Assembly (NCBI GenBank): GCA_021613535.1
Contig: CP075495.1
Span: 558,001-622,000, forward strand
From: Adineta vaga
Taxonomy: Eukaryota; Animalia; Rotifera
Direction of reading: 5' to 3'
Length of the DNA: 64,000 bases
Positions 1-33,502 of the stretch are shown here, piece after piece (the stretch's first letter is position 1; each line of letters starts with the position of its first letter). Under the pieces are notes generated by a model, which did not search any database, was not told where the DNA came from, and worked only from the letters and a program-made list of their open reading frames with translations. Made by a program: the position numbers and the translations under genes.

Positions 1-2
1 CT

Positions 3-2433
3 ATTTATTCAACTAAAGATATTGGTCAACCATATTATTTAGCTGCAATTGATTTTAATAATGATAATTATATCGATATTGCTGCGACAATTTTGAGTTC
101 GAGTGAAGTTGCTATTTATTTCAATGATGGTCAGGGTAATTTTGAACTTGCAAGATTATATTCAACGAAATACGGTTCAAATCTCTATGCTCTGGCGATC
201 GCTGATCTTGATCATGATAATCAATTAGAAATTATTGCGACTTATTGGGGTACGGGTTATGTTGGAATATTAACTCAATATAATGCTGCAAAATTTACTA
301 ATCAATCAACATATTCAACAGGATCTGCTCCACGTCCATATTCATTAGCGATAGGTGATTTTAATCTTGATAATCAAACAGATGTTGTTATTGCTAAGTC
401 TGCAACTGATAATTTAAGTATTCGTTTTGGTTCAAATAATGATACATTTACAAATGAAATAATCTATGAAATAGGAAGTGATTCTTATCCACAATATGTG
501 ATTACAAATGATGTTAATAAAGATAATTATTTAGATCTTATTGTTGTTAATTCAAAAAGTAATACAATGAGTTTAATGTATGGATATGGAAATGGTTCAT
601 TTGCCAATCAACTAATTTATTCAACTGGAGATAATTCACATCCTTATTCAATTGTTATGAATGATGTAAATAATGATCAAAGAAATGATTTAATTATTGC
701 TAATGAAGGAAAAGATAATATTGGAATATTTCTTGGATTTGACTATACAACTTTTATGAATGTAAATACTTATTTGATTGAAAATCATACAACACCATAT
801 AGTGTTGTTGTTAATAATTTTAATAATGATAATGAACTTGATATTGCTGTTGTTTTTTATGATAGTTCGAATTTAGCGATTCTTCTTGGACAAGGTAATG
901 GAAGTTTTATTATTTCAATGTCCTATTCTATAGGAGATGATTTATTTATATCCATTTATGTTGGTTGCAAATGATTTAAACAACGATAAACAATTAGATC
1001 TTATTGTTGTTATCTATGGTCTAAGTAGTGTTGGCATTTTTCTTGGATTTGGCAATGGAACGTTTGCTCCTATAATAACATCTTCAACTGGAAAATATTC
1101 CGGTCCTAAATATGCTGCTATTGATGATGTTAACAGTGATAATGTATCAGATATTATCTCAGCAAATTATGGTGCTAATACAATAAGTATTCTGATCGGA
1201 TTAGGTAATGGAAGTTTTATTCTGATGGATACATATTCAACTGGAGATTTTTCTGGCATACAAGCAGTTGCTATCAATGATTTAAATAATGATGGGCATG
1301 CTGATATCGCCGTGATTAATTATCTTATTAGTAATATGATCATTTTTCTTGGTTATGGAAATGGAAGTTTTACAAAACAAGTGACCTATAATATTTGTTA
1401 TCAATGTTGGCCAATATGGATAACAATAAATGATTTTAATAAAGATAATAATCTTGATATTGCTGTAACCACATATAATAATGAATACATAGGTATTTTT
1501 CTTAGTTATGGCAATAGTAGTTTTGCTAACGCTGTTTATTATTCAACTGGTGATGGTTCGGGTCCAACATGTCATAGCGTTGGTGATTTTAATAATGATA
1601 ATATCTTAGATATTGCTGTCGCAAATACTGGCATTGATAATATAGTTATTTTATTTGGATTTGGCGATGGAACATTTCTATTAGGACGGGCTTATTCAAC
1701 TGGAAAAGGATCAATTCCACAAGCAGTTAGTCTTGGTGATTTTAATCATGACAAACAATTAGATATTGTTGTTGTTAATTCACAATCAAATGATATTCAA
1801 ATCTTTCTTGCTAATGGTCGTGAACCTTTTGCAGGCATAAAGAAATTCGATACTGGTGATGGATCAAAACCTCATTCAATTGCTGTGAATGACTTGAATC
1901 ATGATGAATGGATGGATATTGTTGTAATTAATTATGGAACTGATAATATTGGTATTTTACTTGGATCTGGTAATGGAAATTTTCATAACATGACAACATA
2001 TTCAACAGGAACCAATTCTGGATCATATTCTATTGCTATAGCTGGTTTTAATAAAGATAATCAATCTGATATTGTTGTTACAAATTCAGAAAGTAATACA
2101 ATTAGTATTTTTCTTGGTTTTGGAAATGGAACATTTGTTCTCACATCAATTTATTCAACTGGAGATCGTTCAAATCCATATACAATTGTTATCAATGATA
2201 TGGATAATGATCAACAATTTGATCTTATTATTACAAATGCTGGCACAAGTGATATTTTAATTCTATATGGATATGGAAATGGAACATTTGAAAATGAAAT
2301 ATCATATCCATTAGGATATCAATATCTTCCTTATTCAATTGTTGTTAATGATTTAAATAAAGATGGATGGATGGATATGATTGTTGTATGTTATCAAACA
2401 AATCATTTAGAAACATTAGTTAAAATGTGTTAA
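3..2433 (+). CDS. FG-GAP/VCBS-repeat beta-propeller protein, 5'-partial, with one frameshift at ~941-948
   Basis: Many DFNxDxxxDI(V/A)V...G.GNG.F repeats. The frame is open from position 3 (IYSTKDIGQPYYLAAIDFNND...). ORFs 93..974 and 937..2433 join if one copy of TTTA in TTTATTTA (941-948) is removed. Confidence 0.85.
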
Positions 2434-4185
2434 TCGTATTTTCAGAATAAATACTTTTTCAAAATTTTATCGCTAAAAAAAGGATAAAAGTTTGAGCGAA
2501 TTTCATCGAATTGATCTAAAAAAAGTTCATTTAAATAAGAATTGCCGTCATTATGTCCTATAGATTTTGAAAAGACGTTCTTCGCAGAGATCTTTCATCG
2601 AAGGTTATCCAAAAAGCGACAAAGGAAATTTGAGTACATATGAACACTGAGAAAAAAAATCAGAGATTCTTTGACCTGTCGCCATATAGAATTGATGATA
2701 AAGGAGCGAAGAATTTGCGAATAGTCAATCATTTTTAGAATCTGATTATCTCGACCGAAAAATATCTGGTCAGGCTAAAAATTAGGTTTTGTACTTAAAA
2801 TAGTATGTTCTAAAAGCTTAGATATGTCCCATACGAAACTGAAAACTTTATTGAGCAGCTCTCTATAGCGCTCGGTTGTATCTCTAGTGCAGTGGATCCT
2901 AATCGAGGACGTAAATATTTTGAGTGTGAGAATGAAATATCATTATCATTCTCACCGCACTCTCAATATATTTGACTAACGTCTTCGTAATACTATGAAA
3001 CAATATTTTCAATATATACATTTACAGTACCTCTTATTTATAAAGAATATAAATGTGGATTTATCATCGAAATGTGTACAATTATCAACAGGTATGTTAG
3101 CTTCCGATGTCAACGGAGATAAATAACGCATTCTTTTATAAAGATAATACACCATAGAACAAACCCAGAATATAACATACGAGAAGTATTTGAAATCTGG
3201 AATAGAGAAAGGAAAATCTTTAACTTAGACACGTTACGACTAGTGAAGGATTATGAATCGGAAAGGAACTCTGAAAAATCTCTGACTTTAAAAACAAAAC
3301 GTACTGGTAGGATTTGGAATCCGAACAGGAAATGCTAAAAAATTGAAAGATGTTGTGCTGACGTATATGAAATTCGGTTTGATTTAATAAAAATATAAAA
3401 GTGATGACGATGGTGCCTAGGAAAAAAAATTCCTATGTTATGTTTTGCAGTGGAAAAACAATAAAAATCTGAGTAGTAATATGATGTCCATTTTGTAAGT
3501 GACACATTTATGTAATTCTATTTAATGCGTTATATATTGAGAGAGATAACATCTTGAAATTTGAGTTAATGTGAATTATAGTATGGTGAATATGTGTATT
3601 CACATAACATGCTTTATTTTGTTTTTAAATACCAAGCATTTCTATGCATGATCCTGAAATCTGGATTTGCGTTAATATATGTTAATATATTGATAAATAT
3701 AATATAGATATATGATGAAGGTCGATTATGAAAACTGTTCGAGGTATGTTATTACTTTCTTATTGTTGCGACTAGAAATTGAACTTTCAAATGTTATAAC
3801 AAAGCATGATATAATTATGATCAATGAATTTATCAACTATTTTCTAGCTGTTTTTGTAGGTAGGTATGAACAAACTTTGAACGAAATGGTCTAACGCCAT
3901 AAACAACATATTATTGACAGTTTAAAAAAACTACAATTTATTAGAAAAATCTTATCGAAGTTCGACAGTATTTCTTTTCTTATATAAATATTTGAAAGTC
4001 TCCTATGTGCTTATGTTATATAGTTATGAAAATAAAATAGAAGAATCCTTCGTTAAAAGAAGCAAACGTATTTGATGTATTAGAAGTCACTTTGACATTT
4101 CAGATTCTTTTCAAAATTTTCAATTTAATTAAAGATAATATTAAATATAAATTTATTTTGTATAAAATCGATTGATTTCATATAG

Positions 4186-5797
4186 TTACAAATGTGTATT
4201 ACGTATGAATATTAAATTTCTTAATTTTATTCTAATAAAACGAAATTGATGTCGAATAAGTCGATATAACATTTCAGCAACTTCCATTAATGAAAGAAAA
4301 CTAATTCCAATCCAAAGACCTGTTTGACCACCAATATTTGATAAAACATCAACAGGACTTAATGATGCTTGTTGTGTATAACTCGTAACTTTAGTTGTTT
4401 CACAAACAATATCTAAACCAACATAATTTGTTTGAATATCACTTCTCCATGTTATTGACCAATTTAAAGGTAATGGAATTGATGATGATTCAACAAATGT
4501 TTTTATATCATCGATATCCCATTCCATTGGTGCGAGACTTGATGATATTTTCAATGGAAATTCAATATTAGAACAATCTAAACCACAATTTGAACCATAT
4601 TTCCCTGAAATATCTGATGAACTTTGAAATCGATTTGTTGCATTTACATAACAAGAATCCGATAAATTACAAAGTTGTGTATGAATAACAGTTGTACTTC
4701 CCAGAGGAAGAACATAACGAGCTGACCATTGAGATGGATCAACACAACCACATTGTCCATAAACGTAAGTTTGAACAGCTGCTGTAAAACATACGTCAAT
4801 TGTATAATCATATTTTGCACCAGAAAATTGATCATATAAAGCTTTCATTTCTGGAGTCACTGTATTGCTACATTTTGTATAAGGTGATGGTAAATATGTT
4901 GTTGTTGTTTTACTATAACCTAATTTATGTCGTCGTCCTGGTATTAATTGAATACCTTCATCCTCAATACTTGGTAATTTTCGATTATCATGAACCATTG
5001 ATACTATACTTACAGCTATTTATAGAAAAAAAAACTAAGATAAATAGAATAAATTAAAGAATATTCTTACCATTTGATAAATATGGAACATATTGATGAC
5101 TATGTATATAAAGATCTAATTGTAATAAACCACTCATACCATTATCATTATTATAATGTAATTGACCATTATTTATATTTGATGCATCAGCATTAAATGT
5201 ATAACATAAACCATAAATTTGAGATATAAATGATACAAAATCATTAGCTGAACAATTGATTCCATTATAAGTACATTTAATAAGCATTTCTTTCAATGGA
5301 TAATAATATTCAATTAAAGATTCATTATGATTTATAATATATCGAGCAAAATCAGAAATATATAATGATTGTTGTTTCGTAAATATATTTGTATTATTTG
5401 TATTTGTTAAATTAAGTGAATTTGTATAATTTAGAAATGGTTCAATTAATGTATCATAACGATATGGTGAATAATTACAAATAGTTACACCTGGAAATGT
5501 TTGTGGCCATTCATAAATAGAATCAATTGTTGTTTGAGTTGGATAACTATAATAAGCAAGTACTGCTGTTATTATAAAATATAACATTATGCCAGTAAAA
5601 GCAACAAATGAAATAAGCCAAAAAATACGATTAGGAATACTTTGACTTCGTGCAATACCAGGAATACCATGTGCTGATGTATTTAAACTAAATTCTTTAA
5701 TTATATCACGACGTTGACCTAATTTTGATCGAGATTCTAATGCATCAGCATTGATTGGAAATACTGTAGTAATATGTTGAATTGAATAATTTGTCAT
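4186..5797 (-). CDS. DEG/ENaC (amiloride-sensitive sodium channel family) subunit, 2 exons
   Basis: TSAHGIP pre-TM1 motif, FPGVTICN, GLCYTFN, Cys-rich domain, and SNIGGQTGLWIGIS TM2. A 55-nt GT-AG intron at 5070..5016 joins the two ORFs in frame. Confidence 0.93.
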
Positions 5798-6922
5798 TAT
5801 AATTTGAAAATTGAATCAATAGTTTAACTTAGATGGGTTATTTAATATAAGAAAAAAAAACACTTATGATGAATAATATTGTTTTTTAAACGAAATAATA
5901 CAATAAATATATGTGCAGGTTTCTGTATAAATATATATGCATTGGTACTTACAATTTATTTTTGTAGGAAATCAATTAGATTAAAAAGAAGTTTTGATTC
6001 GATTAAGCAATGGATGAAATGATTCGATGCTTAGAAAAGAAGGGTATGGGTGCGGCTGTAGAGGTACAGAGTTGGGTGGAGGTGAGAAAGAAGTGTGAAT
6101 CGTTTCCTCGTGTATAAATTTGCTAGTTGAATTCGTGTCACTATTGGCATACGCAGAAAATACCTGCCTTTTGACAGTCGAGGGCATAGTGAGTCGGCAC
6201 GACGAGTGTTACTTGTTCAATATCGTTTGATTAATGTGTATCAAATTATCCCTACCAATTTACTTCAATTTGATAAAATATGAGAAATTATTATATATTT
6301 ATCTTTTTCTTTTCTTGAATAATTCGTATCCTAAAATATATATCAATATTTTTGTCATTTTTTGTTACATACAATCTCTTAATATCCGTTCTTGTTGAAA
6401 AACCAGAAAATGATGTCAAATATCGACCAGAATATCTTCAAATTGAATACTGATGGAACTTAAATAAATCTCAATAAGGAAAAGTCATTCATTTTCATAG
6501 AAAATACAATTATCTGTTTACAAATAGTTAGTAATACTAAAATCATTTTTTTATCAAATGAATTATAATTTATTTAGTGATGAATTCAATATTTATATGG
6601 GAGTATAGCTATTGCTTTATCTTCTTACAATGTCTTTATTATATAAAAATTCAACTATATTCAATCATTTGAAAACGATTTAATTAAGAAAATTTTGAAA
6701 TTACATCTCTGATAATTCTTGAAAAAGAACTATGTCATTAAAAAATACACTGATTTGTGTAAGAATTCTTATTCATGGAAGATTTATCTATATTAGTACA
6801 TATCATATGCCTTGTCTTTTTAAAATACCAAATAGATGGTGGAATGCCGTAAAAATCATCCACACCCGCTCACATTCACTCACCCTTCGCCCATGCCCAC
6901 AGCGCTCAACTACACTCACCGT

Positions 6923-7018
6923 CAAAGGGGAAAAAGCACGATTTAAATCACTTTTGAGTCAAATAAATCAGCTAAACTCATTTTAAATCAATAAATCATA
7001 AATCGCTTTTCCCCTTTG
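6923..7018. mobile_element. 96-bp miniature inverted-repeat element (hAT-like MITE)
   Basis: Ends CAAAGGGGAAAAAGC ... GCTTTTCCCCTTTG, with internal TAAATCA repeats. No clear target-site duplication. Confidence 0.55.
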
Positions 7019-8508
7019 TCGTGGTCCTTATCAGGAACACCAGAAAAACTGAGTTTTGAAATTTCACTAGAAATGTTGCATAGAAATAGGCTTCTATGGG
7101 AGTAGTTTATTATGAAAGCTTCAGGTTCTAATGTTCTTATTTCAAAACAGCAACAACTAAAAGATCTGAAACATTCACAATAAAGTACTCTGACTGATGC
7201 CTATGCTTCTATGTCAAGTTTCAAATCAAATGTCATTCGATTTGGATAATATTGAAAATTACGAGAAACGAATTCAGATGAACTAATTTTCTCGAGTTGG
7301 TTTTAAAACAAAAGAACACCAATGAGAAGGTTTGAAATCAATTTTATTGACAAATCTCATTGGTATTATTAGAATATGATACGATTGATATATGTTTATT
7401 AAAAAATCAGATAATGTCAATTGCATCAACTCAATTGAGAGAATTTTGTTAAATTTCACCTGAGTTAAATCGAATTTTAAAATTTATTTATACAAAAATA
7501 AGCAACAGACTTTAAATAAATCATCCAATGGTGATCAAAAAATCATCTTCACCATTGAAATTGGTAGATAATAACTGATAAAAGAATACTTCTACGACGA
7601 TCTGATTCATCTTAAATACGTTTTCAGAAAAAGAGAAAGATCAATTCAAAACAGAAATATAACCACAAGTTGATGCATCATTTCTTTTTGTATCGTTATC
7701 TATTATAACAAAACCATGTATCAGTTTGTTACCTTTAATCGACTGATTTAATGGTTTTTTTGTAAAGTTTTGTTCGGTTGTTGATAAAAGAACAAGAAAA
7801 ATGAATCTTTTTTGGATTAAATTCAATAATAGACTTCAAATTCTCAATCGATTCTGTATATGTTTTCATCATCTTTAGTTTAAAATAATCATTAATGTAT
7901 TACTTAGAACATTTATTATGGTTTACAGTATATCTTTGGAGACCCATCGATCAGAAGTCATGAATATATATTAGTGCAATATTATTCTCAATCCTATGTA
8001 AGGATGAGTTGAAAACATGGAAATTCGTCTCTTTGAAAGTGTGTGTGTATCTGAAGTGTTTATGTCATTTATTGCTAATGTTAGACTTTTGCGATTATGT
8101 CATCCATGAACTTCACTTTAGTATAAAGTATCATTATCCATTTCATGAATGAGTCCAATGAGGTCCAAGAGACTGACGCGTTACTTGTTTTAATAAAACT
8201 CCTTTTATAAAGAAATACTGTTTTCAACAATAACTTTACAAATTTCGTCCGAAAGATTAGAATTTGTTACGAGTGTATACATCTACGCTTTCTCTATCAA
8301 ATAATCTCTAACAAAACTGTCATAAAACAAATATTTACATACTCTTCTGGCAAGAAAAAAAAGCTTCTGCGATCGATAACATTTTTTTTTATTTTTTATA
8401 ATACGAGTAAAGCACGTAAAAAGGTATTTCTTTTTTTTCTGTCTCAATTCTCTATTTCAATAGGAATAAAGCACGGTAGATTTTCATGGTATACACCAAC
8501 ATACAAAA

Positions 8509-10818
8509 ATGGCACATTACGTAAAACAAGCTCAATCGAGCTCAGTTTCTTCACCAGAGAAAAACATTCATCCATTCAAAACTTTTCAATTAGTATGGCT
8601 CGATTCTAATTTTAAATCATATGATGAAAATCAATCAACTTATGATGCATTACAAACAATTTTTACGCATAGCTTGACATTCAATGATTGCAATCAATGT
8701 GAACATTGGCTTAAAAGTTATAAAGGCAATGAAATGATTATCCTAATCATATCTGGTAAATTGTCAAGAGTAATTGTACCACGTATTCATCATTTGGACG
8801 CTATCATTGGTATTTGTATCAATTGTTTGAATCGTACTCGTTATGAAGTATGGGCGAAAAACTATGGTAAAATACTTGGTATTGCTACTGATTCAAATGA
8901 TCTTATAAAAACAATTTCTAATTATCAGACAATTTTTCAAAGTATTGAAGATTCCAAATCAATTCAAATTATTCGGAAACATTTTCTTAATTTCACTTTC
9001 GATTCAAAGCATGCATCTTTCATCTGGTATCAACTTTTACTTGAAATTTTGGTTTCATCTTCCTATCTACCACCACAGAATACATTATCTCAATTAAGTC
9101 AAATTCTTCGTCAGCACTGTGCAAATAATCCTTCTCATCTGGCTACAATCGAAACATTTGAAGAAAAATATCACTCAGAAAAAGTCATATATTGGCTTTT
9201 ATGCGATACATTTATCGGACATTTTGTGGGAAAAGCATTGCGCGATCAGAATATTCACATACTTTTTCTTTGTCGTTTTCTTCTTCAAGATGCTTATTTA
9301 AAAATAAGTTCATATTCAGTTCGAATATTCTTTAACTGCATATCGATTACGCCGATGTTACATAAAGAAATTGATTTCTTCAAAGCAAATCAAGGTGAAT
9401 ATTTAAGTTTTAACGATTTTTTATGTGCTTCAACAACTCGACCTAATATCGAATCGTTCGAAAATAATAATTATTCATTTCAAATGATTTTATTAGAAAT
9501 TCATGCATATATTCCTCATGGTGAAAAATCATCGTTCCTATACATAGATCAAAATCTTACATCTGGTAAAAATCAAACAATTAATAACATTATATTTATG
9601 TGTGGTTCAATATTTCAAATTGATTCTCTAACTGAAACATGCAATTCTATTTGCATTTTACGATTAAAATTAGTTACTGAGAGAAATCTAGGCATATTGA
9701 CAGAAATGAAACGACAACTTCGGAAAAATTCCGATTTATGTCTCATCGGTGATTTGTTAGAAAGATGTGATCAACATGAGAATGCTATCGTTTACTTCAA
9801 ATCTCTTCTTCAAAATTTACCCGCACAACATATTCAGTTAGTGAAAATACAAGATCGATTGAATAAACTTTCAGAAATCAAATATAATGATCATGTGTTC
9901 GATCTAGAATCTGTTAGTGATGTTCAATTTATTGTTGTAGGTTTGAAACCTCATTTGAACACATTGGCTTTAGCGATGTTCGACGCACTTTATCAGTTAA
10001 TGGATGGTTCAATACAAGTTTTTGAGAATGAGAGTGATGTTGATTTACGACAATTTGATGATAAGACTGTTTTTCTCTTTACAAGTGATCAGTTCATTGC
10101 CAGGATGACGGAAGAATTCGGAGAAAATGTTCTACTCTTCATTTTGGAAAGTGATCCGACTAAGGTGGACAATCAACGACGATTTCGTACAGGTGAAGAT
10201 CTCATTTGTCAATTAGCCGATGAATTGTATCGTTGTTATAATCAGGAAACATCGAAATATATTCCAATTGGTGATATAAAAACAACTGAAAATAAGAAAA
10301 ATGTAGCAGATCGCATTCACAGTACATTACGAAAAGTCCATGAAACAATCACGAAAGAAAACAATGATAATTCATTAGAAATCTGTATAGAAACAATCAT
10401 TGTTTGGCTTAGATTATATACACAATCTAATGAAACAGCAGATCAAATACAGAGTGATCTATGTGAGATCGTTTCATCTTATTTAATTTTTAATGATCTT
10501 GACATATGTCGACAATATCTATCTGATAAAACGACGAGTGCTATATTTTTAATTATGGATGGAATATACGACGAATCGATTATAACTAATTTCAAGAGTT
10601 TGAATAATGTCAAACGTTTATATCATTATCAACCATTAACATCAGCGAGTAAACCGATTCTTACTAACTTCGACGATCTTCGCTATCAAATAGCATATGA
10701 TCTTATCGCTCATTATACAGATTTAGGTACGAAATATCGTGCAAACAATGCAACAGAACAATCGCGTAACATGTTTTCAAAAGCAAAGACTCTATGTGAT
10801 TTTATTGCTGATCTTTAA
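8509..10818 (+). CDS. ADP-ribosyltransferase-like multidomain protein (VWLD receiver-like domain, degenerate ART, TPR-like helices, C-terminal receiver-like domains)
   Basis: LVWLD...F.D...C N-terminal domain, FIWYQLLLEIL, IYWL..DTF...VGKALR, and FNDFLCAST. The YRG and ExE catalytic motifs are not recognisable. The C-terminal part has a second IVWL...IFND...C module. Confidence 0.7.
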   Translation: MAHYVKQAQSSSVSSPEKNIHPFKTFQLVWLDSNFKSYDENQSTYDALQTIFTHSLTFNDCNQCEHWLKSYKGNEMIILIISGKLSRVIVPRIHHLDAIIGICINCLNRTRYEVWAKNYGKILGIATDSNDLIKTISNYQTIFQSIEDSKSIQIIRKHFLNFTFDSKHASFIWYQLLLEILVSSSYLPPQNTLSQLSQILRQHCANNPSHLATIETFEEKYHSEKVIYWLLCDTFIGHFVGKALRDQNIHILFLCRFLLQDAYLKISSYSVRIFFNCISITPMLHKEIDFFKANQGEYLSFNDFLCASTTRPNIESFENNNYSFQMILLEIHAYIPHGEKSSFLYIDQNLTSGKNQTINNIIFMCGSIFQIDSLTETCNSICILRLKLVTERNLGILTEMKRQLRKNSDLCLIGDLLERCDQHENAIVYFKSLLQNLPAQHIQLVKIQDRLNKLSEIKYNDHVFDLESVSDVQFIVVGLKPHLNTLALAMFDALYQLMDGSIQVFENESDVDLRQFDDKTVFLFTSDQFIARMTEEFGENVLLFILESDPTKVDNQRRFRTGEDLICQLADELYRCYNQETSKYIPIGDIKTTENKKNVADRIHSTLRKVHETITKENNDNSLEICIETIIVWLRLYTQSNETADQIQSDLCEIVSSYLIFNDLDICRQYLSDKTTSAIFLIMDGIYDESIITNFKSLNNVKRLYHYQPLTSASKPILTNFDDLRYQIAYDLIAHYTDLGTKYRANNATEQSRNMFSKAKTLCDFIADL

Positions 10819-10895
10819 ATACAAAAACTCTTTTCTTTCAATGTGTTTTGTGTTATAATCATAATAATTTTCTTTCTTTCTTTCGTTCTTTTCAG

Positions 10896-11408
10896 ATGCC
10901 ATCAATCAGGGATATTCAATTTGATTCATCGTATCAGGAAGCTACTTTCTGGATGTTTTTAGTTTATCAATTAGATGGAATTGGTTTAGAAGTTCCATTA
11001 CGTAATGCACAATTGATGTCCTTTGTTCAACCATTCCATAATAGACAGATTTGTCGGAATTATATGTTAGATCATAATCAAAAACTCGTAACATTATTTG
11101 CGTATAGTGAAGATATAGAAAAATGGTGGAATGATCATAGAGATGATATACCATTCAACGTTCAAGAAATTTATATCTTTTGTGATACATCGAAAGATGT
11201 GGCATGGATAAAGACTTATACAGGACGTTTTAGTTCTAAAGTAAAAGACACTTTTATTTATGATCGACTTGATGAGAAAATCTTATATTATGCAATTGGA
11301 TTTATCGGTAAATTAATAGAAGAAGCTCAAAATGATACATACGATCGATTAAAAGTTGTTCGTAAAAATTTATGCAAAGCTTTATCCAAATTATTAGATG
11401 AACAATAG
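10896..11408 (+). CDS. Small (~170 aa) receiver-like-domain partner protein, MPSIRDI...
   Basis: ATG at 10896 directly follows TTCTTTTCAG. The protein is similar to the 32153-32710 product (IRDI..DS, F.....C..Y..., TLF...I..W, W...YT...). AATAAA follows at ~11435. Confidence 0.7.
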   Translation: MPSIRDIQFDSSYQEATFWMFLVYQLDGIGLEVPLRNAQLMSFVQPFHNRQICRNYMLDHNQKLVTLFAYSEDIEKWWNDHRDDIPFNVQEIYIFCDTSKDVAWIKTYTGRFSSKVKDTFIYDRLDEKILYYAIGFIGKLIEEAQNDTYDRLKVVRKNLCKALSKLLDEQ

Positions 11409-11725
11409 AATCTAAGTGATTTTACATTTATACCAATAAAGTTCTTTCGAAGAATAAATTTTTTATTCTTTAAACATCAATTTGAAAATTTCGATTCAAT
11501 CAAAACGAACTTATGCGAAAGGGTTTTTTTCCATATTATTCATCATAGATAAATATGTTCTTTTTTGGTTCATAAAATGAACCGCGTGATACTAAACTCA
11601 ATTCAAAGAACAAAAATGACAGAAGAGAATTATTTCCTGTGTTGTCATTTTTTTATTTCCTTTGAAGAAAGTTTGTTTGAAAACGTTTTTCTTCAACGTT
11701 ATTATTCATAAATTATTGAAAGAAT

Positions 11726-12586
11726 ATGAGTTTATCATGGCTAAATATTCTTACTTGTCTTTTTGGTTCAATCACAATACTTCTCACCATTGTTATTATC
11801 TTAATTCTATTCAAATCATTGAAACGAACACAAAATATTTCATTATTGTTAGTGATGAATACTTCTATCACATTAACAATTCATTCTCTTGTGTTTCTTG
11901 AAACTCTTCTCATTCCGTCTTCAAATTTAACATTTTTCTGTAAAATACGCAGTGGTTATCTCATTTCTATATGTTCATTATCTGTTGCTTTATCCTATGT
12001 TTTACAAGCGATCTATCGATTATATCGAATTGTTTTTCCAACTTCTCTTATTCATTGTCGTCATTATTATTTTTGGTTTCTTCTCATTCTTCTTCAATGG
12101 TTATTCACATTGATCATCTGTTTACCATTTCTATTTATCAAAGGATTTATTGCTTATATTCCATTTGAAGAATCCTATTGTGTGACAACTTATCGTAGTC
12201 TAACTGCTTCAATTTATGGTTCAATTGTAATCTATATTATTCCACTTTCAATTCTTATAACAATCTATGTATATGTTGTTTTATTTATCAAACGTTTACA
12301 ACATGGAACAACTATTCATCGACAACGACAAAATCAACGTGATTTAACTGTTATCAAACGAATTATTCTAACAGTGAATGGACTTGTCTTTGCTGGTTTA
12401 CCTTCAATGATATTATGGATGATCTATTTAATCAATGGAAATCTTATCGAACCATTAATCTATCAAATAACATGGCTAAGTATTCAATTGAGTATTGTCA
12501 TTGAAAATCTATTATTGATTTATTTTACAAAAGAAATTCGTGATTTTATTCGACCAATACGTATTGTTCATCCAACAATTAATTAA
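11726..12586 (+). CDS. Divergent class A (rhodopsin-like) 7TM GPCR
   Basis: Seven hydrophobic segments, FCKIRSGY, LQAIYRL (DRY-equivalent), YIIPL, and NQRDLTVIKRI. Confidence 0.85.
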   Translation: MSLSWLNILTCLFGSITILLTIVIILILFKSLKRTQNISLLLVMNTSITLTIHSLVFLETLLIPSSNLTFFCKIRSGYLISICSLSVALSYVLQAIYRLYRIVFPTSLIHCRHYYFWFLLILLQWLFTLIICLPFLFIKGFIAYIPFEESYCVTTYRSLTASIYGSIVIYIIPLSILITIYVYVVLFIKRLQHGTTIHRQRQNQRDLTVIKRIILTVNGLVFAGLPSMILWMIYLINGNLIEPLIYQITWLSIQLSIVIENLLLIYFTKEIRDFIRPIRIVHPTIN

Positions 12587-30031: not shown

Positions 30032-31479
30032 ATGGCCATGGCTTCGAATACTGATAACCAATTACAATGTCTAAGAATGATACGACTTGTGAAAGCCTTA
30101 TCAAATAATGAATCAACTCGCGAAAAAATGAAAAGTGGTCTTGTGAAAATTTCTACTGTTAAAGGTTTTACAAACATAATGGAAAGATTAAAGATAGATT
30201 TTCAATCATGTATATGTGTATCTTCCCTCAGAGAAGCAGTAGACAACACCTCGCTACAACAAATGCAAATAATATCTGCGGAATACGATGATGTTGATAA
30301 ATGTATTCATGATATCGAATCGTCTATAGATAATAACGTTGTTCTCCTATTATTCGATCATCATGTTAACAACATAAATATTGTCCCACAACTAAGATTA
30401 CTTTCAAATGTCAAGAAAATATATCGATGTCTTTTCGAACATGAACCAAATGAACCAGAAAGCTCACTTGATACACCTTCTAAAATTCTGATTCAAAATT
30501 TGGATTTTTCTGGTCTAATGGCACTTACACATGTCTTTTTTATTGATCTTGCGAGAGATATTCCACAATCGAATCAGACTATAGAAGATTTTATTAATTA
30601 TTGTCAACTATTATATAAAGATAGACCAAACTATTCAAATTATAGAGAACAAATGAAACATTTTAAAGCGAATTACGGCCAGAATAAAGCACTGACATGG
30701 TATACAATGCCTGATTCTTTCATCTCTCGGATTGTATGTAGAACATGCGCCACGCTTGATTTTAAAGCATTACCAAAAGTTAGCTTTCTACTATACGATC
30801 TATATACACAACTTAAACAACTTCATGCGCGTCAAATAGAATCAAATAAGTTACAGTCAGGTTTCTTTGTATATCGAGGTGCAAAAATCTCCGAAACTGA
30901 ACTTAGTCAATTCAACAATGAAGGAAATTTATTTGTTACCAGAAGTTTCTTGTCTACTTCAACGAATGGACGTGTGGCGAATATATACGGTGGAGAACAA
31001 TTAGATCCTCACGATGGAATACCAGTGATGTTTCGAATCCGTATTGACTATGTTAATATACACGATAAGCCTATTGCATATCTTGATGAAATCAGTAGTA
31101 TTCCAGATGAGGAGGAAGTCATGCTTCCTATGGGTATCGTCCTTCGACTAAAATCATGTAAAGAAAACGAAGATGATTCGAACTATGTATGGGACATTGA
31201 AATGATTCGTGGTGAGGATGAGGCAAATCTGGATAAAGATCCAACTGAATTCGTTAACTTGATAAATGCGGAGAGTAATTATCTGTTTCTTGTTGAAAGC
31301 ATTTTCTCACCAATAACGAATGATAATCAATTATTTGTGGAATTATTGAATAGCACACCTTCTCCAGCCGATACTTCAGCCGGTCCAATTACTACACAGA
31401 TGAACTTTGTAAGTAACACTTCTCATCTATTTTTGCTCTTTTGTCTATTCATCGTCATTTTTTTAACAAGATATCTTAA
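30032..31479 (+). CDS. R-S-E clade NAD:arginine ADP-ribosyltransferase-domain protein
   Basis: ALTWYT..SF, VYRG, FLSTST and DEEEVMLP give an intact catalytic triad. Probable intron 31409-31470, then a stop at 31477-31479. Confidence 0.85.
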
Positions 31480-32100
31480 GCTATGGTTAGATTAGTACGA
31501 AAAATTGGATATAGTGAAACCTCTCATAGTTGATTCACTCCTCTATAATGGATGGTTCTCAAAATACGACGTGTTAGATTTTGCAGGAAATGAACATCCC
31601 TATAGCAGACATTTGTATATAATTCTATACGATGAAGATTTTGCAAAAGTCTGTTAGTGCTCATAAGAGAAACTCGACTAGATTTTGACAACCATTCAGT
31701 TATCGAGAACAAATATGAATGTGCAAAGAAGTAGTGATAAACAGTAGCGTCTTGTATTGTTCATCAGGAATTTTAATGTTTCTACAATACAAATTTACTT
31801 TGTGTTTGAACGAGCTGTCCCACAAACTCCCTCGCCTGTCTCCAGTGAACGCTTTTCTTACGTTCATAGAAAATCGAAAATATATTTTAGATCAGCTAGT
31901 ACGTGTAGAAGTAAATGTATGATAGATATGCGCTTTACATATCTTCACCGACACCGTCAACTTCATTTGATTTAACATACGATCTTCTTGAATATTATAG
32001 TAAACTAGATTGTGCTTTTCAATCTAGAAAACATTCAAAAAATGTGAGAGAAATCTTTATTGAAGCACGATGATTCTGAAAGTTTTTGATTGAGCTTTAA
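31480..32100 (+). pseudogene. Decayed C-terminal region homologous to the last ~300 aa of the 8509 ORF
   Basis: DSLLY-MDGS vs DALYQLMDGS. 31981-32100 reads DLLEYYSKLDCAFQSRKHSKNVREIFIEAR*F*KFLIEL* and aligns without gaps to DLIAHYTDLGTKYRANNATEQSRNMFSKAKTLCDFIADL*. Confidence 0.7.
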
Positions 32101-32152
32101 TAGAAAATTTAAAAAAATGAAATTCTTTCTATTTGATTTTTTTCTCGTCAAG

Positions 32153-32710
32153 ATATACAATATACGTGATATAACCTACGATTCACATCTCTATTCTCAA
32201 GTCGATCCATGGGTTCTTATACTTGAACAACGAGATGAATCATGGACTCGATTTCCTTTTTATAGTACTAAAAGCATTAAATTCTTACAATATTTTGATA
32301 GTATAACAACTTGTCAAGGTTATATTAGAAATAATCCCACACATCAATTTACATTATTTGTATCTGAAGACTGTATATGCACATGGATTTATAATAATAG
32401 TCCAATTCCAAACAATCTAAAGGATATAATTGTCTATGGAGGAAATAGTGGAAGAATGTTCAAAGTATGGGCAAGACGATATACAAAAAATATAAGAGAA
32501 GTTCTCACATTTGGGCAATTTGAGCAATATTTACTGACGTTTGGATTGAATCATGTTCTAAATGCAGCGAATCACTTCACATCAGATTTCGGTGTATTAA
32601 ATCTATTGAAGAACGATTTTGAAGATATTTGTACCGCATTGGGTCAATATGGGGACAAGACAAAATGGCCGTATGCTGATACACTAGGAATGAGTGTTCA
32701 AGAAACTTGA
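32153..32710 (+). CDS. Paralog of the small partner protein at 10896 (start codon reads ATA)
   Basis: After TTTTTTTCTCGTCAAG the frame reads IYNIRDITYDS, versus MPSIRDIQFDS in the paralog. The frame is open to 32710. Confidence 0.6.
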   Translation: MYNIRDITYDSHLYSQVDPWVLILEQRDESWTRFPFYSTKSIKFLQYFDSITTCQGYIRNNPTHQFTLFVSEDCICTWIYNNSPIPNNLKDIIVYGGNSGRMFKVWARRYTKNIREVLTFGQFEQYLLTFGLNHVLNAANHFTSDFGVLNLLKNDFEDICTALGQYGDKTKWPYADTLGMSVQET

Positions 32711-33502
32711 ATAGAACTGTTGATTAATTATTCGCTCTATCAATTGAAAGTTTTTAAAGAGAAAATGATTAAATGAACAATCGATATTCTTTCTTTCTAT
32801 TTTAGATGAACGATATAATTTTCGATCCAATCTATTCTGATAGAAAACTAGCAATCGCATTATTTTATAGTAAAAATGAACGGCCTGTAGTTATTTCTTT
32901 ACCTCGCATGCATTTCTGATGACATTCTTCAAACGTTTATATGAAGTCAAACTCGCTACTAATCATATGAATCGCTATTCTCAATGTTTATTTCAATTAT
33001 ACGCATTCGTCGATAATACAGTAACATGGTCTTCTTTTCTTCAAAATAAAATTTCGCCAAGCAATTTAACCAATATGAAATCTTCTGTCGAGAGACTATA
33101 ATGAACAATATACCAAAACTGGACAAGATGTTATCCACAAATTATCGACGTTTTAACAATTGATCAAGTCAATCGATACTTATCAATATCTGACCTTAAA
33201 CTGGCCGAAAACTTGCGTTTTGAAGTCAAAGAAAATAAGATTTTCATCGACTTCGTCTTGCATTAATCTCTGTACATACAAATCATAGAATTCATTGCGA
33301 AATCAAAAATGATAAAATTCGTCTCATTGCATCTAATCCTCCACGATATTATCGAAACGTCGCTAAAAATCTTTTATTTCTTTAATTGATATTAGTTCAT
33401 GAAAGATTGTCACGAAGATGGATGTAGATATTATTTTAACGGCACTCTGAAAACAGATATCATATAGATGTCATTCCCATCGTATTCACCCACACCCTCA
33501 AG

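Follow-up and report, generated by a model that had tools for sequence, protein, structure and literature searches.

The bdelloid rotifer Adineta vaga carries a two-gene cassette whose organization points to an operon-like unit. The cassette lies in a 64,000-nucleotide stretch (the window; contig CP075495.1, positions 558,001 to 622,000) of the 100.8-Mb, six-contig genome assembly searched here (window G000:C2:558001-622000; GC ~30%). Gene 1 encodes a large protein in which a receiver-like N-terminal domain, a domain with an ADP-ribosyltransferase (ART) fold and a tail module follow one another. Gene 2 starts shortly downstream on the same strand and encodes a small partner protein, a stand-alone paralogue of the tail domains with a receiver-like fold and a helical hairpin. 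We consider it probable that this arrangement represents an operon-like cassette of bdelloids, made up of a protein with a variable head and a constant receiver-like tail and of a paralogous partner whose mRNA would be released through trans-splicing of a spliced leader (SL) and which would cap the tail, rather than an ART toxin with its inhibitor.

The partner is invariably linked to the tail module. Six-frame searches of the whole genome, first with the partner itself and subsequently with a profile built from ten paralogues, located 11 copies at nine loci (10 intact, 1 a pseudogene), each of them preceded on the same strand by a tail-type open reading frame (ORF) ending 25-240 nt upstream. 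At eight of the nine loci (seven intact ones and the remnant in cassette 2, the second copy in the window) this ORF ends in a conserved terminal helix with the consensus AKEMFxKAxxLCxxLxxF followed by a stop codon; at the exception, L011, it is a truncated tail that ends short of the last domain. In the converse search, a profile of the last tail domain matched seven tails in full length and one as a remnant, and a partner follows every one of them; ~58 more matches cover the generic receiver-like part only. Outside this genome the partner profile finds 82 clusters at 50% identity, most of which consist of stand-alone proteins, 165-197 aa long and matched from residue 1 on; those with a named source come from Adineta, Rotaria and Didymodactylos. 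Homologues needed a profile search, as a word-based search with the partner returned only the window's own protein. The identical layout is present at six foreign bdelloid-like loci (L018, L019/20, L021/22, L026, L027/28 and L029) with gaps of 15-70 nt and at a Rotaria magnacalcarata locus (L030) with a gap of 102 nt. The two-gene cassette is known so far only from bdelloid rotifers, and we found no description of this protein family in the literature.

The head that precedes the tail differs between loci. Heads and tails that short introns divide at L016, L017 and L021 were analysed exon by exon. A pseudo-ART head stands 5' of the tail at these three loci and in Rotaria, an ART domain matching PF01129 combined with an NHL-repeat propeller at L014 (3015-5911), and a receiver-like domain without an ART domain at L015 and L011. 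At L013 (oriented, 2176-5919) a 915-aa ORF resembling ionotropic glutamate receptors ends 66 nt before the tail ORF. Since the heads comprise predicted dead ARTs, a true ART, an ART with NHL repeats and no ART at all, the partner is tied to the tail, and comparison of the loci identifies this ~300-aa module as its constant associate, not the ART. The first-pass annotation had proposed a conserved, co-transcribed ART/partner system, expecting partners to lie closely downstream of ART genes. Conservation is borne out in this genome, in Rotaria and in bdelloid-like contigs, and linkage within the genome is complete, but it is linkage to the tail and not to the ART.

The spacers of the cassettes share two hallmarks of intercistronic regions resolved by trans-splicing. 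The short same-strand gap is conserved in relatives, ranging from 15 to 240 nt over the nine genome loci and the foreign contigs, and a 3' splice acceptor stands at the start of the downstream gene. YAG directly precedes the partner ATG in 17 of 17 cases in this genome and the foreign contigs, mostly behind a pyrimidine tract; as background in the window, AG precedes 6.2% of ATGs and the full signature of YAG and pyrimidine tract 0.6%. Beyond this acceptor signature the spacers of the cassette loci are too diverged to be aligned. Rotifers have been known to use SL trans-splicing since 2005. A search with the 23-nt rotifer leader sequence (PMC3795323) gave 42 SL exon copies with GT after them in the genome and none in a reversed control. 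The copies cluster on contigs C5 and C2, many of them as divergent head-to-head pairs with starts ~156 bp apart (e.g. C1:2551158-2551338 and C5:9884354-9925971), and their first base is T, compared with G in the published leader. A metagenome scan for the 3' end of the leader followed by a degenerate partner start gave two chance matches in unrelated marine contigs, which were rejected because the upstream bases differ from those of the leader and a stop closes the ORF after 10 codons.

Sequencing runs indicate that the cassette is one transcribed block. Contigs from three RNA-like runs cover 8417-11458 only, whereas coverage extends over the full 4.4 kb in a DNA-like run from the same organism; the three runs were taken as RNA because the flanks are silent. 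Contigs of gene 1 extend from 8417 to 10764 or 10861. Those of the partner begin at 10891 (run X1) and 10900 (X2); their ends, at 11452-11458, lie shortly past an AATAAA. One contig of putative RNA from run X5 leads from 10657 through the gene 1 stop to about 10897, about 2 letters into the partner. Five unplaced letters of one contig are uninformative as to a leader joined at 10896, given that the 34 nt before this position are masked as a repeat. Co-transcription, as claimed in the first-pass annotation, is plausible in view of this single block and of the acceptor at every partner ATG. RNA-like contigs start ~90 nt before the gene 1 ATG, and a pyrimidine tract followed by AG (...tttcaatag) near 8463 is a possible leader acceptor for gene 1 itself. 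The only joint reported in the runs puts 4 nt (GATC) in place of the 37 nt at 10251-10287, so that the loop of a tail hairpin loses a net 11 codons in frame. It occurs in each of the three RNA-like runs; since the DNA-like run has it too, as loose ends, we regard it as an allelic or strain indel and not as an intron.

Partner and tail domains adopt the same receiver-like fold. The AlphaFold2 (AF2) model of the partner (pLDDT 91) consists of a five-stranded beta/alpha domain and two long C-terminal helices. In the model of gene 1 (pLDDT 79), helices at residues 395-461 lie between the ART fold and the tail, and the tail contains a receiver-like domain with a hairpin (472-617) followed by a receiver-like domain with two helices (629-768), the latter built on the plan of the partner. 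A Foldseek search gave no clear match of the partner in the PDB. In a full VIA search, its best solved matches are response-regulator receivers, 3hdg among them (Z 8.8, rmsd 3.3 Å, 114 residues); the top 50 are almost all receiver domains with Z of 7.1-8.8, although a Z near 8 can mean no more than a common arrangement. Among predicted structures, the partner is matched best by the N-terminal domain of ART-TPR proteins from rotifers and by small proteins of this group. At the profile level, hhalign aligns the tail domain (96.8%, E 2.4e-10) and the partner (79%, E 1.5e-5) with the N-terminal domain of gene 1, which upholds the earlier proposal that the partner shares the VWLD-type fold of the big protein. 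Pfam gives no match for the 769-aa protein or for the partner. In an alignment of 10 partner sequences, neither D nor K forms an invariant or near-invariant column that could correspond to a phospho-acceptor Asp, an acidic pair or a Lys, and the conserved columns hold hydrophobic residues, Cys and Gly. As no acidic or Lys column is conserved, the partner is best described as a pseudo-receiver.

The ART domain of cassette 1 is predicted to be catalytically dead. ART-encoding genes have undergone a very large expansion in rotifers. The AF2 model of the gene 1 ART domain matches Vis toxin, C3, iota and CDTa in Foldseek searches (prob 1.0, E 3e-7 to 1e-4), which establishes the fold. In the alignment of catalytic columns, however, the Arg position on strand 1 is occupied by N and the ExE position on the ARTT loop by NN. 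Rotaria orthologues, 47-50% identical, likewise have N and N at the Arg and ExE columns, and other paralogues keep R or K and one or two Glu.

Complex prediction supports binding of the partner to the tail. The predicted complex of the tail (465-769) with the partner scored 0.76, the best of three controls 0.27; among solved complexes 51 of 78 attain that mark, among mismatched pairs 2 of 108. At least 85% of the contacts are common to the three runs, and the partner has a pLDDT of 70-75. The predicted interface is a helical bundle formed by the hairpin and terminal helices of the tail together with the two C-terminal helices of the partner. The homotypic regulation suggested in the first-pass annotation is to this extent backed by a predicted homotypic contact, from which a regulatory role may follow.

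Cassette 2 is a decayed copy of the same unit. The order ART, receiver-like region, stop, gap and IRDI partner, reported at both places in the window by the first-pass annotation, is found as described in cassette 1; in cassette 2 it survives in decayed form, with a tail remnant interrupted by stops and a partner that opens on ATA. Its recurrence despite strong divergence is confirmed, the two partners being homologous at 22% identity (BLASTP, E 1e-13). The ART domain of cassette 2 passes the PF03496 (ADPrib_exo_Tox) cut-off (24.7 bits compared with 23.4, E 1.7e-5) and, as read from the sequence, retains the catalytic motifs YR, STS and EEE. The tail remnant is 61% identical to the tail of L016 (tblastn, E 6e-12), a profile match likewise showing the 2 stops, and partner A is 59% identical to partner A of L016; on these comparisons cassette 2 is a decayed relative of L016. 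The annotated model of cassette 2, P0003 (642 aa), joins ...QMNF in frame to IYNIRDI from GT 31409 to AG 32151-32152, skipping the broken tail. Because the partner ATG is absent, cis-splicing onto a former trans-splice acceptor is plausible here. None of P0001, P0002 and P0003 had an exact match in public assemblies. L016 itself, on the same chromosome (5998-7200; G000:C2:793271-794473), holds a series of three ORFs, first that of the tail and then those for partner A (185 aa) and for partner B (183 aa, UJR24516.1), with spacers of 73 and 96 nt that both end in TAG directly before ATG. It is a candidate tricistronic unit and the intact relative of cassette 2.

Table 1. Features of the two cassettes (positions in the window).
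Feature	Position	Strand	Remarks
Cassette 1, gene 1	8509-10818	+	Single-exon ORF, 769 aa, TAA stop at 10816-10818; annotated protein P0083
Gene 1, N-terminal receiver-like VWLD domain	8575-8958	+	Residues 23-150; five beta/alpha units in AF2 model
Gene 1, ART-fold domain	9001-9678	+	Residues ~165-390; predicted catalytically dead (Foldseek and catalytic-column alignment)
Gene 1, tail module	9901-10815	+	Residues ~465-769; two receiver-like domains, a helical hairpin after each (AF2)
Gene 1, conserved terminal helix of tail	10762-10815	+	Paralogue alignment
Cassette 1, intercistronic spacer	10819-10895	+	77 nt, pyrimidine-rich, ends ...ttttcAG with AG at 10894-10895; no AATAAA
Cassette 1, gene 2 (partner)	10896-11408	+	170 aa, starts MPSIRDI; annotated apart from gene 1 as P0001
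AATAAA 3' of partner stop	11435-11440	+	RNA-like contigs end at 11452-11458
Cassette 2, head	30032-31408	+	Receiver-like N-terminus and ART domain with R, STS and ExE motifs; GT donor 31409-31410; annotated model P0003
Cassette 2, tail remnant	31960-32100	+	Last 46 codons (31960-32097), two in-frame stops, original TAA 32098-32100
Cassette 2, spacer	32101-32152	+	52 nt, ends AAG
Cassette 2, partner A	32153-32710	+	Open frame, 185 codons; first codon ATA, not ATG
Cassette 2, partner B	32806-33245	+	Pseudogene with frameshifts and 7 stops; ATG after 95-nt spacer ending TAG

Downstream of cassette 1 an ORF at 11726-12586 encodes 286 aa with a multi-pass membrane, G-protein-coupled-receptor-like hydrophobic pattern. 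The RNA-like runs have no contigs on its 5' part (11726-11959) and sparse ones beyond.

In the mechanism we propose for cassette 1, one precursor would be transcribed from upstream of 8509 to about 11455, and the partner mRNA would be released from it by SL trans-splicing at the AG before the ATG at 10896, the leader forming its entire 5' untranslated region. Gene 2 would be translated from its own ATG, which lies right at the 3' splice acceptor. The partner would then dock by its C-terminal helices on the terminal helices of the tail to form a pseudo-homodimeric helical bundle and, once docked, may cap or regulate the big protein. Several observations weigh against this scheme. The runs were merely guessed to be RNA and, as contigs, are unable to show transcript ends. 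No read or contig carries the leader joined at 10896, in data that comprise contigs only and in which 10862-10895 (34 nt) are masked as a repeat. Most spacers lack an AATAAA that could account for the end of the gene 1 mRNA. The predicted interface is no more conserved than the rest of the proteins (0.37 compared with 0.51 elsewhere for the partner, 0.49 compared with 0.48 for the tail), the profile match between the partner and the tail domain is weak (hhalign 23%, E 9e-4), and gene models for Rotaria and cassette 2 fuse both ORFs.

These fused models bear on whether the partner is a gene at all or the cis-spliced last exon of the upstream gene, so that one gene would yield one protein. The first-pass annotation had raised this case itself; it finds no support in cassette 1 and may apply to cassette 2, where P0003 joins the ART head in frame to a partner with ATA in place of ATG. 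In Rotaria magnacalcarata, model P0044 (939 aa, CAF2099175.1; L030 3993-4116, CAJNRE010011178.1) combines the big protein and the partner. It takes a Val codon (GTA) as donor and skips 102 nt that code for the conserved terminal helix with its stop; since this helix is encoded in the supposed intron, the fused model is probably an artefact of annotation. In cassette 1, no good GT donor stands in frame near the gene 1 stop, and use of the nearest in-frame GTs would remove the conserved C-terminus. The stop, which comes directly after the conserved terminal helix, and Met1 of the partner are both kept among paralogues at 21-36% identity, and the reference annotation lists the 769-aa and 170-aa proteins as two entries (P0083 and P0001). 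Spacers of 15-16 nt fall below intron size, homologues are mostly called as stand-alone proteins, and the contigs of the three RNA-like runs contain no joint linking gene 1 to 10896. Overall, a single cis-spliced gene is very unlikely for cassette 1, and the evidence favours two genes.

Two genes could also be independent, the partner having a promoter in or near the spacer and a monocistronic transcript with a trans-spliced outron, and linkage reflecting shared regulation or tandem inheritance. Runs X1 and X2, which lack a contig across 10765-10890, agree with this, as does the lack of reported operons in rotifers (PMC7986045, 2021; we found nothing later on the subject). We nevertheless regard independence as unlikely, because spacers down to 15-25 nt leave no room for a promoter, the X5 contig continues from gene 1 past its stop codon into the spacer, and linkage and orientation are invariant at all loci examined. 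A bicistronic mature mRNA, from which the partner would be translated by termination-reinitiation or internal initiation and not after trans-splicing, would fit the short spacers and the single AATAAA-type 3' end after the partner, absent from most spacers. Reinitiation, however, has no need of the invariant YAG and pyrimidine tract before the ATG, a splice-acceptor signature, and SL RNA genes are abundant in the organism, which leaves this reading only a very slim chance. Equally little speaks for the analogy drawn in the first-pass annotation with bacterial conflict systems, in which the partner would be an immunity or inhibitor protein that neutralises the ART. The ART fold does resemble toxin ARTs having immunity partners (6drh, 8za7), and the ART domains of cassette 2 and L014 have Pfam support. 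But the cassette 1 ART and its Rotaria orthologues lack the catalytic Arg and the ExE glutamates, and a toxin/inhibitor pair is therefore unlikely; L015 and L011 carry tail and partner without an ART domain, the predicted interface lies on the tail helices and not on the ART, and the receiver-like fold of the partner is unlike known ART immunity proteins. We accordingly abandon this analogy as highly improbable. A broader version of the operon-like cassette that we favour, one we put forward tentatively and hold to be rather doubtful, is a lineage-specific modular system in which interchangeable heads (active ART, pseudo-ART, ART with NHL) would sit on a constant tail capped by a paralogous subunit from a true SL-resolved operon, and in which the trans-splice acceptor of cassette 2 would have been captured for cis-splicing to give an ART-partner fusion gene.

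Among known systems, the SL-resolved operons of nematodes, tunicates, flatworms and chaetognaths are similar in having same-strand genes tens of bases apart with an acceptor at the start of the downstream gene. As in those animals, the host possesses SL RNA genes and documented SL trans-splicing, and the products are predicted to interact. The cassette differs in belonging to a phylum from which such operons have not been reported (PMC7986045), and its polycistronic precursor and the leader on its partner mRNA are putative. With an ATG that abuts the acceptor and an AATAAA missing from most spacers, it is closer to tunicate operons than to the SL2 operons of C. elegans. At the protein level, the central domain of gene 1 shares the fold of R-S-E ARTs (C3, iota/CDTa, Vis and vertebrate ARTC; PF03496/PF01129; Foldseek E 3e-7), from which cassette 1 and its Rotaria orthologues are set apart by the replaced Arg and both ExE glutamates and gene 1 by its missing Pfam match. 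The N-terminal receiver-like domain is common to rotifer proteins of the ART-TPR expansion, named NAD(P)(+)--arginine ADP-ribosyltransferase (atlas TM 0.57-0.61), but the cassette has a receiver-like tail where the TPR array would be. Partner and tail domains resemble CheY-like receivers and pseudo-receivers in their five-stranded beta/alpha fold; unlike those, the partner has no conserved acidic pocket or phospho-acceptor Asp column, bears two added long C-terminal helices and comes from an animal, outside any histidine-kinase context. Bacterial pairs of an ART toxin and an immunity protein such as Tre1-Tri1 (PDB 6drh) likewise have a small co-oriented gene next to that of an ART-fold protein, whereas here the partner is tied to the tail, the ART is predicted to be dead in many copies, and partner fold and predicted interface are unrelated to those of known immunity proteins.

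Metazoan SL-type operons encoding interacting proteins and multidomain proteins of the ART family are already known; new are the phylum, the module of receiver-like tail and partner, and the heads that carry a dead ART. The module, in which receiver-like domains and helical hairpins are set on ART or pseudo-ART heads, is uncharacterised and has no Pfam match. The fused gene models in Rotaria, and possibly also that of cassette 2, probably merge two genes. The cassette joins two genes with products predicted to bind one another, and its paralogous loci, which share the junction of stop, short spacer, acceptor and ATG, offer many independent sites at which rotifer operons can be tested. If our reading is true, this SL-resolved operon would rank among the first documented in Rotifera.

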